Shown piece by piece: positions 20,763 through 58,040 of a DNA stretch of 64,000 nt (the first letter of the stretch is position 1; each line of letters starts with the position of its first letter). The position numbers and the translations under genes are program-made. The notes below the pieces were generated by a model, which saw only the letters and a list, made by a program, of their open reading frames with translations, did no database searches and had not been told where the DNA came from. The stretch lies in the sequence record NC_019526.1. One strand, 5' to 3'.

Positions 20763-22169
20763 ATGGCTAAAAAAGAAAAAACTCAAGGTATTGATAATGC
20801 AACATTAACGCTATTAGATTACAACAGTTCTGAATATTTGAATAGCACTTCACTAGAATATTCAATGTATACATTAGATCGTGCTATTCCCGGAATTGAT
20901 GGTCTAAAGAGTTCACAACGAAAAGCAATTTTTACGCTAAGTAAAATATCAGGTGAAATTAAAACAGTATCATGTGCTGGTCGCATGATTAGTGATGGTA
21001 TCTATTTACATGGTGATTCATCTGCAAGTGGTACACTACAACAACTGGCATCACCTGTAGCAAACAATTATCCACTCATTGGTAAACGTGGTGGTTTTGG
21101 TACACAGGTAAACAGTACACCAGCATCCCCGCGATACACATATGTGAAGAAGAACAAAAGTACTGAAGAATTAATTCTTCGTGATATGGAAATTATCCCA
21201 ATGCAAGAAAACTATGATGGTACCACTATGGAACCAACACATTTTCTTCCAATCATTCCATTATCGTTGTTTGGTAATGACAGTATGTCGGTTGGTTATA
21301 AGAGTACAATTCTTCCTTATAAAATTAAAGATATTATTGATAACTGTATCCGCGTTATTGATAAAACTGAACTAAGAGAAATGACCCCATATTATGTATC
21401 AGTTGGTGCAAGCGAAACTGTAACTAAACTTGATGAAAACAAATATGAGTTCTATGGAACAGCAGAAGTTATTGATGCCAGTACCGTAAAAGTTACTGGA
21501 TTGCCACCAAACTATAGCGTTGAAAAATTTGTTGAAAAATTAATTAAGATGGGTGATGATGGTGAAATTCGTGATTATGATAATGGTAGTACTGATACCA
21601 TTGATATAACGATAAAATTACCACGTGGTACATCAAGCAAATGGACTGAAAAGGATGTAATTGATTATTTTGGTCTATCCAAGAAAATTACACAAATTCT
21701 CACAGTACTCGATGCGAATGGTCGTGTTCGTGTATATGATAACACTTCTGACCTAATTAAAGATTTCGTCGAATTTCGTTTTGGCTACTATATTAAACGT
21801 TATGAGAAAAAAGTTAAAGATTGTACTGAAGAAGTTATATATAAAATTCTAATTAAAGAATGCTTTGATAATGATATGATTGGTAAAGTTAAATCATTTA
21901 AGAATCGTGCTGAGTTAGTTGATTTTGTAACTAAACTCAATATTGATATTGGGGCAAGTGAAGATAATATTCAAAGCATAGTTAATTATCCTTCTTATCG
22001 CTGGACACAAGAAAACTATAATGCAGTATTGAAAGATATTCAGGATAATATGGATTTAATTGATAAGTACAACGATTTACTTAATAATAAAAATAAAATT
22101 TGGGATATCTACAAAGAAGAACTTAAAGAGCTTCGTAAGATTGATTTTACACCAAAACAAGAAAACTAA
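20763..22169 (+). CDS. Type II DNA topoisomerase small subunit (GyrA/gp52-like)
   Basis: RAIPGIDGLKSSQRK, YLHGDSS, ASPRYT catalytic Tyr. Confidence 0.95.
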   Translation: MAKKEKTQGIDNATLTLLDYNSSEYLNSTSLEYSMYTLDRAIPGIDGLKSSQRKAIFTLSKISGEIKTVSCAGRMISDGIYLHGDSSASGTLQQLASPVANNYPLIGKRGGFGTQVNSTPASPRYTYVKKNKSTEELILRDMEIIPMQENYDGTTMEPTHFLPIIPLSLFGNDSMSVGYKSTILPYKIKDIIDNCIRVIDKTELREMTPYYVSVGASETVTKLDENKYEFYGTAEVIDASTVKVTGLPPNYSVEKFVEKLIKMGDDGEIRDYDNGSTDTIDITIKLPRGTSSKWTEKDVIDYFGLSKKITQILTVLDANGRVRVYDNTSDLIKDFVEFRFGYYIKRYEKKVKDCTEEVIYKILIKECFDNDMIGKVKSFKNRAELVDFVTKLNIDIGASEDNIQSIVNYPSYRWTQENYNAVLKDIQDNMDLIDKYNDLLNNKNKIWDIYKEELKELRKIDFTPKQEN

Positions 22170-52460: not shown

Positions 52461-52486
52461 CAGTACATTTTAATTTAAAGAATTAA

Positions 52487-53117: not shown

Positions 53118-53127
53118 AAAGTTTTAC

Positions 53128-53177
53128 GGATGATTATAAATCTGAATTGACAGAAACAGCTAAAACTGTTATTATCC
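53128..53177 (+). ncRNA. 50-nt three-way-junction RNA, copy 1
   Basis: GGATGAT-TATAAA-TCTG AATTGA CAGA-AACA GCTAAAAC TGTT-ATTATCC. Confidence 0.75.
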
Positions 53178-53185
53178 TATTTTAT

Positions 53186-53370
53186 TCCACAATCAGACGT
53201 ATATGGTGTAAGTTACGTCGATGAAATCCAGAACAAGATCTCTGGTACTCTAGGAAGTGGTGAATGTTAACCTAGACGGGCTTGTTAATTGGACGATAAG
53301 CAATTAATACTTGACTAGCAGGTTTAAATTAGAGGTGACTGTCCTTCACTATACTGGAAAACCGGATGGA
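53186..53370 (+). ncRNA. Candidate structured ncRNA (~185 nt) with pseudoknot
   Basis: Four hairpins; loop TGGTGAA can pair with TTCACTA at 53345. Confidence 0.5.
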
Positions 53371-53388
53371 TTTTTAATTAAAAAAGTG

Positions 53389-53417
53389 TTGAACAAAATG
53401 TTCAATAATGATATAAT
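53389..53417 (+). promoter_or_regulatory. Promoter TTGAAC-17-TATAAT containing the inverted repeat TTGAAC-N5-GTTCAA
   Basis: Repeated at 54264, 54432 and 54639. Confidence 0.7.
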
Positions 53418-53423
53418 AATTAT

Positions 53424-53505
53424 CAATGTAAGGCGTGGAACAATGTTTACAGAAGTTACTTAGTAGCCTGTACGCCCCACGTCAAGGTAGCCGAAAGGCA
53501 AGTTT
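53424..53505 (+). ncRNA. Candidate structured ncRNA (~80 nt)
   Basis: GGCGTGG/CCACGTC, TACAG/CTGTA, GCC-GAAA-GGC; starts right after a promoter. Confidence 0.45.
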
Positions 53506-53508
53506 AAT

Positions 53509-53558
53509 GGGTGGTTATAAATCTGAATTGACAGAGACTATTAAAACAGTCACCATCC
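53509..53558 (+). ncRNA. 50-nt three-way-junction RNA, copy 2
   Basis: GGGTGGT-TATAAA-TCTG AATTGA CAGA-GACT ATTAAAAC AGTC-ACCATCC. Confidence 0.75.
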
Positions 53559-53581
53559 AAATTTTAATTTAATAGTTTAGT

Positions 53582-53725
53582 ATGAATAAAAAACAAATAC
53601 ATAAACATTATGATGAAATTGCAGTGAAGGTTTTTCGTGGTGAATTAGGTTATAAACCATCTGTTAAATCTAAATATTCAAAATCTTCTTCAATAAAGTT
53701 CAATCATAAAATAGAGTTTAAATAA
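53582..53725 (+). CDS. Possible small basic protein (47 aa)
   Basis: Open frame filling the gap; no clear RBS. Confidence 0.3.
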   Translation: MNKKQIHKHYDEIAVKVFRGELGYKPSVKSKYSKSSSIKFNHKIEFK

Positions 53726-53746
53726 TACTGGACAATAATATATAAA

Positions 53747-54196
53747 ATGAATATCACTAATGTAAAAGATTTTTTAGAATATTTTATTAAGAATACTCGT
53801 GCACGTGATGAATTAGAAAAGAATGGATTCATCCAAGGTTACGATTGCACTAATTTCTTTTATACTATTGATAAACATGAATATTATGTCGATGCAATTT
53901 TAATTGATGATGATGGGTATTGCGTTGGATTTTCATTCGAAGATATATCACAAGATGCACCAATAAACTTTTATGCATTATATTATAATAAAAAAGATAA
54001 TATTTTGAAATTAGGATTTACTCGTGAATCAGATGAAGATGTTGTATTCGATTGTAACACATGGTTGGAACATGATTCATTCTTTCAAAGTACATTAATT
54101 CATAACTTTATGACAACAGATTTAGAGTACTGGAAAAATTGCATAGAATTACTTAATGTAATTTATAATGAACAAATCAAACAAAAATGGCAATAA
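53747..54196 (+). CDS. FQxS-motif family protein (paralog of 43861..44331)
   Basis: WLEHDSFFQSTLIHNFMTTDLEYWKNCI. Confidence 0.75.
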   Translation: MNITNVKDFLEYFIKNTRARDELEKNGFIQGYDCTNFFYTIDKHEYYVDAILIDDDGYCVGFSFEDISQDAPINFYALYYNKKDNILKLGFTRESDEDVVFDCNTWLEHDSFFQSTLIHNFMTTDLEYWKNCIELLNVIYNEQIKQKWQ

Positions 54197-54263
54197 TCAC
54201 AGGACGGTTCGGTATTTGGTAGTATGTTTGGCTGAATAAAGTATAAACGTTTAAAAAAAAGTG

Positions 54264-54291
54264 TTGAACAAAAAGTTCAGTACTATATAAT
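54264..54291 (+). promoter_or_regulatory. Promoter with TTGAAC-N5-GTTCAG inverted repeat
   Basis: Directly upstream of tRNA-Arg. Confidence 0.7.
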
Positions 54292-54302
54292 TGACTTACT
54301 AC

Positions 54303-54376
54303 GTCCCCTTAGTTCAGTTGGATAGAACAACTGCCTTCTAAGCAGTAGGTCACTGGTTCGAGTCCAGTAGGGGATA
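54303..54376 (+). tRNA. trnR: tRNA-Arg(TCT)
   Basis: GTCCCCT/AGGGGAT, ACTGC-CTTCTAA-GCAGT, GGTTCGAGTCC; CCA not directly encoded. Confidence 0.93.
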
Positions 54377-54431
54377 TACCATACAATATGGGAATAGTTA
54401 GAAGATATTCCCAATTTTAATTTAAAAAGTG

Positions 54432-54460
54432 TTGAACAAAAAGTTCAATAATGATATAAT
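54432..54460 (+). promoter_or_regulatory. Promoter with TTGAAC-N5-GTTCAA inverted repeat
   Basis: TTGAAC-17-TATAAT upstream of tRNA-Ser(GCT). Confidence 0.7.
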
Positions 54461-54524
54461 GGTATTATAAAAGGTTGTAATACTTAATATTAACTTTTAA
54501 GAAGATAATTAGTTATCATACACA

Positions 54525-54616
<92 letters not shown>

Positions 54617-54633
54617 TAAAATTCAATTAAAAA

Positions 54634-54767
<134 letters not shown>

Positions 54768-54775
54768 GATTTTAT

Positions 54776-54825
54776 GGATAGTTATAAAGTTGAATTAACA
54801 GCGACACTTAAAATTGTCACTATCC
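54776..54825 (+). ncRNA. 50-nt three-way-junction RNA, copy 3
   Basis: GGATAGT-TATAAA-GTTG AATTAA CAGC-GACA CTTAAAAT TGTC-ACTATCC. Confidence 0.75.
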
Positions 54826-54846
54826 AAATTTTAATTTAAATAGTAC

Positions 54847-54875
54847 TTGACAAAAATGTTCAGTACTGATACATA
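54847..54875 (+). promoter_or_regulatory. Promoter TTGACA-17-TACATA
   Basis: Variant of the tRNA-cluster promoter repeat, upstream of tRNA(CAT). Confidence 0.5.
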
Positions 54876-54884
54876 AAGAATATT

Positions 54885-54962
54885 GGCCCTTTACTCTCAA
54901 GTGGTTAGAGAATCCGACTCATAATCGGTAGGCTCTGAGTTCGAATCTCAGAAGGGCCACCA
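54885..54962 (+). tRNA. tRNA(CAT), probably Ile2 (lysidine) rather than Met
   Basis: GGCCCTT/AAGGGCC-ACCA acceptor and CGACTCATAATCG anticodon arm resemble E. coli ileX. Confidence 0.85.
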
Positions 54963-54981
54963 AATTTTAAAACATAATCTA

Positions 54982-55689
54982 ATGAAAATACAATTACAAT
55001 ATCCATATAATCAAGATTGGGATACAGGTTCATTAACAATTAATCCCGAAGGTCGAAGAACTGTTATTTTATATAACAAAACTACAAAAATCACAAGTAG
55101 TACTGCTTATGCACGATATTTGTTAGCAGTGCACAATAACAGATATTTAACTGAAAATGAAGAAGCTGACCATATTGATGAAGATTTCACTAATGATGAT
55201 ATATCTAATCTTCAAATTTTGACAATAGAAGAACATAGAGCTAAATCAATTGCGAATGGTATTCAAGCTAAATATGATGAATTTGTGTGTAAAGGTTGTG
55301 GAATAAAATTTTTAAGAAGACATAATCAAGTTAAGTCATATACAAAATATTGTAGTAAAAAATGTTCTTGGAAAAATAATCCTCCACCAACAAAAACAAA
55401 AAATGGTGACACGACAATCGATTATGATAAAGTAAAAGAATATATAAACGATGGATTGTCAGATACTGAAATTGCAAAGAAAATGAATATAAATCGCAAT
55501 TCAGTACTAAATTATAGAACTAAACACAATATACCTTCTAAAAAATTTGCTAATGTTAATATTTTAGAAGATAATATTGATGAAATAAAACAACGTTTGC
55601 TTTCTGGTGAAAAGAAAGTTGATATATACAAAAGCTATGGTTCTTCAAAAAATGTTTTTGCAAGATTTTTAAAGAGACATGGATTATAA
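54982..55689 (+). mobile_element. HNH homing endonuclease with HTH tail, inside the tRNA cluster
   Basis: EEADHIDEDFTNDDISNLQILTIEEH (HNH), CxxC/YCSKKC, two HTH-like segments. Confidence 0.8.
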
Positions 55690-55698
55690 TAGAATAAT

Positions 55699-55771
55699 GA
55701 CTCTGTAGCACAATCGGTGGTGCGATTGACTGTTAATCAATTGGTTGGGGATTCGAGTTCCTCCAGAGTCG
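55699..55771 (+). tRNA. trnN: tRNA-Asn(GTT)
   Basis: GACTCTG/CAGAGTC, ATTGA-CTGTTAA-TCAAT; no encoded CCA. Confidence 0.9.
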
Positions 55772-55790
55772 CTTAACAAACCAAAGAATT

Positions 55791-55937
55791 GTACCTAAAT
55801 AACGAGTATATGGATTCTCTATGATTGTCCCTGTATGAGTTAGAGAGATTATTCATAAGAAGTCGAGTGTATAGATTCTCAAAGAAATGATTGTTTATAC
55901 ATGAGTTATCTTAAAACGAATATCTCAAGGTACACCA
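55791..55937 (+). ncRNA. Candidate CCA-ended RNA with pseudoknot (~147 nt)
   Basis: GTACCT/AGGTAC + ACCA; TCTCTA/TAGAGA with TATGAGT/ATTCATA pseudoknot. Confidence 0.5.
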
Positions 55938-55944
55938 AACAATT

Positions 55945-55993
55945 GACTCTGTAGTTCAGTTGGTAGATCTTATATAGTTACCAACCAGAGTCG
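55945..55993 (+). ncRNA. tRNA-Asn-derived mini hairpin (lacks anticodon and T arms)
   Basis: Acceptor strands identical to tRNA-Asn (GACTCTG/CAGAGTC-GCT); D-arm-like GTTCAGTTGGTAGA. Confidence 0.55.
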
Positions 55994-56001
55994 CTTACAA
56001 T

Positions 56002-56066
56002 GGAAGGTGGTAATACGTCAGTATTACCTTTTAAGACCGAAGATATGAGTATCTTCCCTTCCACCA
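56002..56066 (+). ncRNA. 65-nt tRNA-like RNA ending in ACCA
   Basis: GGAAGG/CCTTCC-ACCA; GGTAATAC-GTCA-GTATTACC; GAAGATA-TGAG-TATCTTC. Confidence 0.6.
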
Positions 56067-56068
56067 CA

Positions 56069-56157
56069 CATTGTACTCTTCTCCCGTAAGGAGAATGACA
56101 AAAAACTATCCGAAAGATAGAAAGCCTGAAATAACAGGGTGCAATTAAATTACAATG
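56069..56157 (+). ncRNA. Candidate four-way-junction RNA
   Basis: CATTGTA/TACAATG enclosing three hairpins. Confidence 0.5.
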
Positions 56158-56160
56158 GGA

Positions 56161-56353
<193 letters not shown>

Positions 56354-56377
56354 TTAATTTAAATGGAGTACTGAATA

Positions 56378-56578
56378 ATGTCCAAATATGTTAATCGTCA
56401 AAAACGAAAAGCACGTACTAAGGACGAAATTCTACAGTTGATTCAAAAAAATCAAAAAGATGTAGTTATTGAAGAATATATTTTTCAGTACGGTAATCAA
56501 CAATCAATGGTACAAGAAAGTAATGGTAAGTATCATTCTGAACATTACGACCTTATTAAAAGAATTCTTTTGAAATAA
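56378..56578 (+). CDS. Hypothetical protein
   Basis: 66 aa ORF, GGAG RBS. Confidence 0.65.
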   Translation: MSKYVNRQKRKARTKDEILQLIQKNQKDVVIEEYIFQYGNQQSMVQESNGKYHSEHYDLIKRILLK

Positions 56579-57942: not shown

Positions 57943-58040
57943 GGACATACTGCGGGATCTGTTTTTAAGGCTTAGGTACTTCAGTACTAAAACAATACCT
58001 TAGAAACGGAGTCCAAGTTGAATTCTTGGAATGTCCACCA
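57943..58040 (+). ncRNA. 98-nt tRNA-like RNA (6-bp acceptor + 6-bp T stem, ACCA end)
   Basis: GGACAT/ATGTCC-ACCA; TCCAAG-TTGAATT-CTTGGA; 12-bp central helix. Confidence 0.65.

Follow-up and report, generated by a model that had tools for sequence, protein, structure and literature searches.

The window analysed here, a stretch of 64,000 nucleotides, corresponds to bases 124001-188000 of the Klebsiella jumbo phage vB_KleM_RaK2 (NC_019526.1) and harbors a tRNA cluster in which positions 55791-55937 (RaK2 179791-179937), located on the tRNA strand, carry no annotation. In the RefSeq record of phage K64-1 a 21-codon 'hypothetical protein' is annotated within this element. The local order of features begins with a promoter-like repeat upstream of tRNA-Met (54885-54962), followed by a gene for an HNH homing endonuclease (54982-55689, plus strand), tRNA-Asn(GUU) (55699-55772, plus strand), which ends 18 nt before the element, the element itself (55791-55937, plus strand, 147 nt), a truncated tRNA-Asn-like hairpin without CCA that starts 7 nt further downstream (55945-55995, plus strand), and a CCA-ended mini-RNA of 65 nt (56002-56066). 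In the DNA that separates the element from the promoter preceding tRNA-Met, no terminator-like site was found. On the basis of its motifs, its fold z-score and its homologs we treat the element as a whole RNA gene and as the RaK2 copy of a conserved family.

The surroundings of the element show several features of their own. Repeats of ~70 nt occur at 53122-53191, 53503-53572, 54770-54839 and 53368-54871, each followed by a near-identical sigma-70-like promoter (TTGAAC, 17 nt, TATAAT) facing individual tRNA genes. The sequence AAAGAAT or AGAAT is found 1-5 nt upstream of the 5' ends of the RaK2 tRNA-Leu, tRNA-Met, tRNA-Ser(UGA) and tRNA-Asn genes and of the element (sites at 52470-52486, 54872-54884, 54668-54679, 55690-55698 and 55783-55790); it is not kept ahead of the Asteriusvirus copies of the element described below. 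The truncated hairpin at 55945-55995 (51 nt, z -3.6) has the 7-bp acceptor sequence and the 3' trailer of the tRNA-Asn at 55699 and a D-arm-like 5' part, and is without anticodon arm, T arm and CCA. The mini-RNA at 56002-56066 is a 65-nt three-way RNA composed of the acceptor sequence of tRNA-Ser(UGA) and ACCA (z about -5), and its location corresponds to that of the intron-containing tRNA-Met of phage Muenster. In Turkey5 (L118:1651-1955) and Muenster (L002:2695-3007) the anticodon loop of the tRNA-Met(CAU) gene is interrupted by a group I intron, matched in Turkey5 by Rfam RF00028 with 95 bits, and the RaK2 tRNA-Met at 54885-54962 is intronless. An identity of the element as a group I intron fragment was rejected, as RF00028 is unmatched at E≤10 over 55650-56400 and the Turkey5 tRNA-Met intron is a separate neighbour.

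The sequence motifs named in the original prediction are all in place: GTACCT (55791-55796) and AGGTAC (55928-55933) at the two ends, ACCA (55934-55937) directly thereafter, and, internally, TCTCTA (55816-55821), TATGAGT (55834-55840), TAGAGA (55841-55846) and ATTCATA (55851-55857). Folding of 55791-55937 gave a minimum free energy (MFE) of -39 kcal/mol and a z-score of -3.5, with none of 200 shuffled sequences being as good, and the closing stem has a pairing probability of 0.93-1.0 in the thermodynamic ensemble of the RaK2 sequence. By itself, the combination of a 6-bp closure and NCCA is near chance level, with 52 candidates on the plus strand of the window versus 17-47 in shuffled sequence. 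When the 127 candidates of this type on both strands were ranked by z-score, the element came second and the neighbouring mini-RNA first.

Searches with blastn in distant mode, using the element alone or together with its flanks, found it in RaK2, K64-1 and OU509535 only. These copies are all 100% identical, so no covariation can be read from the three. When only the RaK2 sequence with its MFE structure was used to build a covariance model, full-length matches were obtained in Turkey5 and TH47, two jumbo phages of E. coli, with E values of about 1e-8 per genome. These matches fall exactly inside tRNA arrays, and a blastn search started from that E. coli jumbo-phage copy retrieved 17 Asteriusvirus GenBank records. 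A pattern derived from the conserved columns led to a third lineage, the complete 366-kb uncultivated phage IMGVR_UViG_3300012988_000001, and to two contigs from metagenomes, which are of the Asteriusvirus and the RaK2 type, respectively. Several other candidates were rejected. Marginal matches of the model in Pectobacterium phage CBB and in Muenster lie within protein-coding sequence, and a marginal match at window positions 21481-21635 has the same length as the Muenster match and lies roughly at the expected ortholog site. A 16-mer pattern taken from the internal repeat of the element gave 102 single chance matches in IMG/VR; pattern matches in bacterial genomes were also attributed to chance, and neither these nor one further IMG/VR match fitted the model.

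Phage E9.1 has tRNA-Ser, 4 nt, the element, 6 nt, tRNA-Met, 4 nt and tRNA-Asn, and the uncultivated phage has tRNA-Arg, 4 nt, the element, 6 nt and tRNA-Met. From this order and spacing (4-7 nt between the element and tRNA genes in the homolog arrays) it follows that the element occupies the slot of a tRNA gene, with tRNA-like spacing, and its orientation is that of the tRNA genes in every case. In some jumbo phages of the RaK2-like and 121Q-like kinds, the family thus takes the place of a tRNA gene in the array.

The conserved fold has the form of a three-way junction composed of P1, P2 with hairpin A, P3, and P3b with hairpin B. In P1, GUACCU (55791-55796, plus strand), preceded by U55790 as the -1 base, pairs with AGGUAC, which together with the unpaired tail ACCA occupies 55928-55937 (plus strand). 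A55797 lies opposite A55927 and forms the seventh layer, so that P1 has seven layers of which one is non-canonical (A-A in RaK2, G-A in the others). P2 (55800-55803/55839-55842) encloses hairpin A (55806-55815/55827-55836); together these form unit A (55800-55842, plus strand), with G-A/G-A flanks. P3 is a long-range helix stacked on P1. Its 5' strand (55845-55854, plus strand) reads GAGAU, a bulged U and AUUC, and its 3' strand (55918-55926, plus strand) reads GAAU and AUCUC and is followed by one unpaired A and the 3' strand of P1; the helix thus consists of 4-5 bp (element positions 55-59 with 132-136), a bulge and 4 more bp. The P1/P3 stack comprises 11-12 layers and resembles, in length and in strand topology, the acceptor/T-stem half of a tRNA. 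P3b (55856-55860/55909-55913) encloses hairpin B (55867-55876/55893-55902), giving unit B (55856-55913, plus strand) with its invariant CGAG and UGAG flanks.

This architecture was scored on an alignment of seven sequences from three lineages, fitted to the model and effectively representing three independent lineages. In total 94.3% of the alignment cells pair and 21 pairs are changed on both sides, values that are reached by none of 500 column shuffles, and sliding the 3' partners by 1-3 columns lowers pairing to 28-51%. Five pairs of P1 are kept in all seven sequences and its third pair changes from A-U to U-A. Helix 2, in the P2/hairpin A region, pairs in 97.8% of the cells with four pairs changed on both sides, and, in the P3b/hairpin B region, helix 5 in 80% and helix 6 in 100% with five such pairs. 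For P3 (helix 4) the value is 96.4%, seven of its nine pairs being double-changed, and the outer part of this helix appears as GAGAU/AUCUC, GUGU/ACAC and GUAU/GUAC in the different lineages. RNAalifold run on a structure-blind MAFFT alignment recovered the same helices, P3 included. In RaK2 the consensus fold is identical to the MFE structure, and in the copies of E9.1 and the uncultivated phage it is at most 1.2 kcal/mol above the MFE; the uncultivated-phage copy has by itself an unremarkable z-score of -0.7. The fold is maintained by compensatory changes in three lineages. The original idea of a separate, structured RNA of ~147 nt with an acceptor-like closing stem is supported, and this RNA is encoded by the tRNA strand.

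The interior of the RNA is built in another way than was originally proposed. TCTCTA/TAGAGA had been described as a hairpin whose loop segment TATGAGT pairs with ATTCATA in an H-type pseudoknot, and a further local hairpin had been placed next to the acceptor in the T-arm position. All three helices have a probability of 0.0 in the RaK2 ensemble and forcing them costs 6.5-12 kcal/mol. In the covariation analysis, which had been suggested as a check, the closing stem was kept with the A-U to U-A compensation mentioned above, whereas the hairpin paired in 73%, the pseudoknot in 76% (75.6%) and the T-arm-like hairpin in 32% of the cells across the homologs, the central pairs of the pseudoknot being broken in most sequences. 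The pseudoknot and the TCTCTA/TAGAGA hairpin are unsupported and compete with hairpin A, which is backed by covariation both between lineages and between paralogs: UAUGAGU is the 3' strand plus flank of hairpin A. In place of a local T-arm-like hairpin, the long-range P3 adjoins the closing stem.

The complementary segments that suggested a pseudoknot are nevertheless present in RaK2, and AUUCAU can also pair with AUGAGU on the 3' side of hairpin B, so that an alternative conformation of the AUUCAU segment is possible. The modelled helix (55847-55856 with 55901-55910, element positions 57-66 with 111-120) forms 9 of 10 layers in RaK2 and would compete with P3 and with the base of hairpin B; in Asteriusvirus copies it reaches 14 bp and is iso-energetic with the consensus fold (E9.1). 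No covariation support was found for this AUUCAU/AUGAGU helix. In view of the pairing values given above, a tRNA mimic consisting of acceptor stem, T-arm-like hairpin and internal H-type pseudoknot, like viral tRNA-like structures, is most improbable. Viral tRNA-like structures with pseudoknotted acceptor arms share the tRNA-like end with the element, but a conserved pseudoknot is absent from the latter.

The two arms of the three-way junction are paralogous. Hairpins A and B each comprise 10 bp and are flanked by G-A/A-G juxtapositions, the two halves of the element are similar to each other to a degree that none of 500 shuffles scores as well, and the shared hairpin still pairs through two double and two single changes between the paralogs. 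An old tandem internal duplication gave rise to the two hairpins together with their CGAG and UGAG flanks, and both units are present in all three lineages. Constraint is tightest in the two GA-flanked hairpin bases and in the P1/P3 stack, while loops vary between lineages; this distribution may point, if only weakly, to recognition of shape by a partner, which might be two copies of one protein. The duplicated hairpins are likely to be the working part of the RNA, and one may speculate that they form two equivalent sites for binding a partner.

Each copy contains six to eight G-U pairs, of which several are invariant. The opposite strand, or a DNA cruciform, would have A-C mismatches in their place, and so the structure fits the tRNA strand only, as RNA. 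This bears on the idea that the element acts at the DNA level, as a target of a homing endonuclease or as a recombination or replication signal. HNH genes directly adjoin the element in RaK2 and in several Asteriusvirus genomes, as such a role would have it, but E9.1 and EJP2 carry the element without an HNH gene nearby, and the constant orientation along the tRNA genes also speaks for RNA; we regard a DNA-level element as highly improbable.

A second question is how far the near absence of variation around RaK2 can be taken as a sign of selection. In the block 54979-56016, which contains the HNH gene, tRNA-Asn, the element and the truncated hairpin, RaK2 and K64-1 differ at two positions, versus 2-5% in the flanks. 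In environmental contigs from four public runs, whose flanks are diverged by 2-3%, the element is unchanged. To the left of 55693, OU509535 and one public run carry unrelated DNA. The two-position divergence and the different DNA in OU509535 indicate that the block is a recently shared piece, and it looks like a mosaic that was spread by homing or recombination. The 100% identity in the RaK2 clade reflects this shared block and not measurable purifying selection. A search for loci that encode relatives of the neighbouring HNH protein returned one irrelevant locus.

The mosaic block, the patchy distribution and the abundance of tRNA debris and homing endonuclease genes nearby are also what would be expected if the element were a neutral relic, i.e. 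a decayed tRNA gene or debris of homing-endonuclease recombination that folds by chance. Part of its 3' end resembles a T-loop, T-stem and acceptor strand (CGAAU, 5 nt, 7 nt, ACCA). Set against this are about 20 base pairs that are double-changed yet paired across three lineages, the retention of both paralogous hairpins in each of them, and the blindness of tRNA models to the element even at E≤10, which together make a relic very unlikely.

The family is missing from a number of relatives. The model gave no match in 121Q (whole genome), Munch, fENko-Kae01 and GAP32, nor in Yersinia phage fHe-Yen9-04, Erwinia phage Hallingskeid and the tRNA region of T4. In 121Q the tRNA-Ser and tRNA-Met genes are 7 nt apart (L144:3333-3506) with no element between them, which makes this phage a naturally occurring null within Asteriusvirus. 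As the close relatives 121Q, Muenster, Munch, fENko-Kae01 and GAP32 are without it, the RNA is dispensable in the laboratory sense. Its patchy presence among near-identical phages fits an accessory, host-dependent role and equally weak selection.

The same distribution is compatible with a cis-acting structured spacer that would prevent misfolding of neighbouring tRNAs or guide processing, with the excised piece as a functionless by-product. The element does lie 4-7 nt from tRNA genes inside polycistronic arrays, close relatives manage without it, and its loop sequences differ between lineages. On the other hand, the 121Q arrangement shows that a spacer is unnecessary there, and a 140-nt three-way junction with two GA-flanked hairpins and compensation in three lineages exceeds what a spacer needs. 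Moreover, the RaK2 element keeps its form beside different neighbours (tRNA-Asn and the truncated tRNA-like hairpin). A spacer function is therefore considered unlikely, and an RNA that is itself retained remains the preferred reading.

Comparison with tRNA clarifies what kind of RNA this may be. ARAGORN identified eight tRNAs in the window, none of which is 55791-55937, and Rfam 15 gave no family over these positions, neither at the gathering score nor at E≤10, RF00005 included. Similar to tRNA (RF00005) and to the acceptor/T-stem minihelices that serve as RNase P substrates, the element stacks a closing stem of seven layers on a helix of 4-5 bp, continues after this stem with an unpaired purine and a CCA or near-CCA tail, and has U at -1, G at +1 and the genomic slot and spacing of a tRNA gene. 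Unlike tRNA it has no D arm, anticodon arm, T loop or elbow, one layer of its stem is non-canonical, and CCA is not conserved. The element is not a decoding tRNA.

The ACCA end that had been predicted holds in part. In the copies read, the A after P1 and the bases U(-1)/G(+1) never vary, and CCA is encoded in RaK2 and in UViG_3300012988, i.e. in two of the three lineages only; Asteriusvirus tails read CCC, UCA or UCC, and CCA as a fixed design was thus not upheld. CCA is not a defining feature of the family. Genuine tRNA genes without encoded CCA also occur in these arrays, for example tRNA-Asn and the tRNA-Met of Turkey5, and the missing CCA is consequently compatible with a tRNA-type 3' end. 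With respect to RNase P, the P1/P3 stack and U(-1)G(+1) are substrate features present in all lineages, and RCCA is only partly conserved. A single contig that possibly derives from RNA covers the element; it spans 55796-55946, has the length of a read and a depth of 4, and extends 9 nt past ACCA.

In the tRNA cluster of phage T4, two abundant non-tRNA RNAs have been known for about 50 years. These RNAs, RNAC and RNAD, are released from the tRNA precursor by processing and persist as stable RNAs. The T4 layout is homing endonuclease, tRNA and then small stable RNAs of 119 and 139 nt. Like the element, RNAC (species 1, 139 nt) and RNAD (species 2, 119 nt) are found where a tRNA cluster ends, have a homing endonuclease gene for a neighbour, share the strand of the tRNA genes and are separated from a tRNA by a few nucleotides; their size is similar and their ends pair, and neither they nor the element are decoding tRNAs. 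Differences are found in the construction: RNAC keeps a canonical T arm whereas the element has none, and in the element a GA-flanked hairpin has been duplicated internally. A scan of the T4 tRNA region with the family model returned nothing at E≤10, and the element is thus not homologous to rnaC/rnaD. The function of RNAC and RNAD is still unknown (PMC3014915, PMC9697503).

The explanation that we favour, with a probability of about 0.6, is that 55791-55937 is the RaK2 copy of an undescribed non-coding RNA gene family of 138-147 nt whose members are made in the manner of RNAC and RNAD. By analogy with these RNAs, the element is most likely cut from a tRNA precursor and kept as a small stable RNA. 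It would be transcribed from the tRNA-cluster promoters within a polycistronic tRNA precursor, RNase P would cleave twice, at the element's own U(-1)/G(+1) and where the following tRNA begins, and exonucleases would shorten the 3' end as far as the tail, CCA being repaired in those copies that do not encode it. The product, its ends sealed in P1, would then persist like the T4 RNAs. As CCA is not conserved and neither T loop nor elbow is present, we infer rather than observe recognition by RNase P or by the CCA-adding enzyme.

What the RNA might do once released is a further step. It could be an acceptor-half tRNA mimic that is processed by the host, receives CCA and acts in trans during infection, a proposal that we consider quite doubtful. 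Such a mimic might sequester, as a decoy or sponge, some host factor by which tRNA acceptor ends are recognised (a defence nuclease that targets tRNA, for example, or an enzyme of processing or CCA addition), or it might be a scaffold on which a dimeric protein of phage or host is held by the two identical GA-flanked hairpins. If true, this would be the first function for phage RNAs of the RNAC/RNAD type. Phage or bacterial Y RNAs (YrlA) are another group of non-decoding RNAs with a tRNA-like end, but the element is without a T-arm or D-arm module. A Y RNA identity was rejected, since PF05731 (Ro60/TROVE) is unmatched in the complete RaK2 genome and matches in the control genomes.

We found no description of this RNA in the papers searched, and the element is classified as a phage tRNA-cluster small RNA with a tRNA-like closure, belonging to an undescribed family. 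Unrelated giant phages of Klebsiella and E. coli keep a differently built RNA in a T4-like slot, and the shared slot suggests that phage RNAs accompanying tRNA genes form a general class that has been overlooked. Annotation pipelines miss the element or call a 21-codon ORF inside it. The phages with the gene (E9.1, Turkey5, RaK2) and near-identical ones without it (121Q, Muenster) constitute a natural experiment. Because near-identical carriers and non-carriers exist, function is directly testable by competition on host panels.

The element had also been proposed as a third CCA-ended non-tRNA with the same design as two others of the RaK2 cluster. It does belong with these RNAs: 56002-56066 and 57943-58040 lie in the same cluster and on the same strand and have in common with the element a 6-bp closure, ACCA and a helix stacked in the T-arm position. 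A shared design beyond the closure was not found, as 57943-58040 combines a canonical T arm (5 bp, 7 nt) with a single long arm and 56002-56066 is a two-hairpin mini-RNA of 65 nt, both being unrelated to the element in sequence and architecture, and the family model gave no match to either of them. The RNA at 57943-58040 comprises 98 nt immediately 5' of tRNA-Thr; its 6-bp closure is accompanied by an A-A layer and by ACCA, and next to its canonical T arm a long arm replaces the anticodon arm. Additionally, a non-coding stretch at 56160-56350, closed by GGACA...TGTCC, is common to RaK2 and Muenster. A diverged form of it follows the tRNA-Asn of Turkey5 (L007:2675-2805), and this stretch may be another conserved structured RNA.
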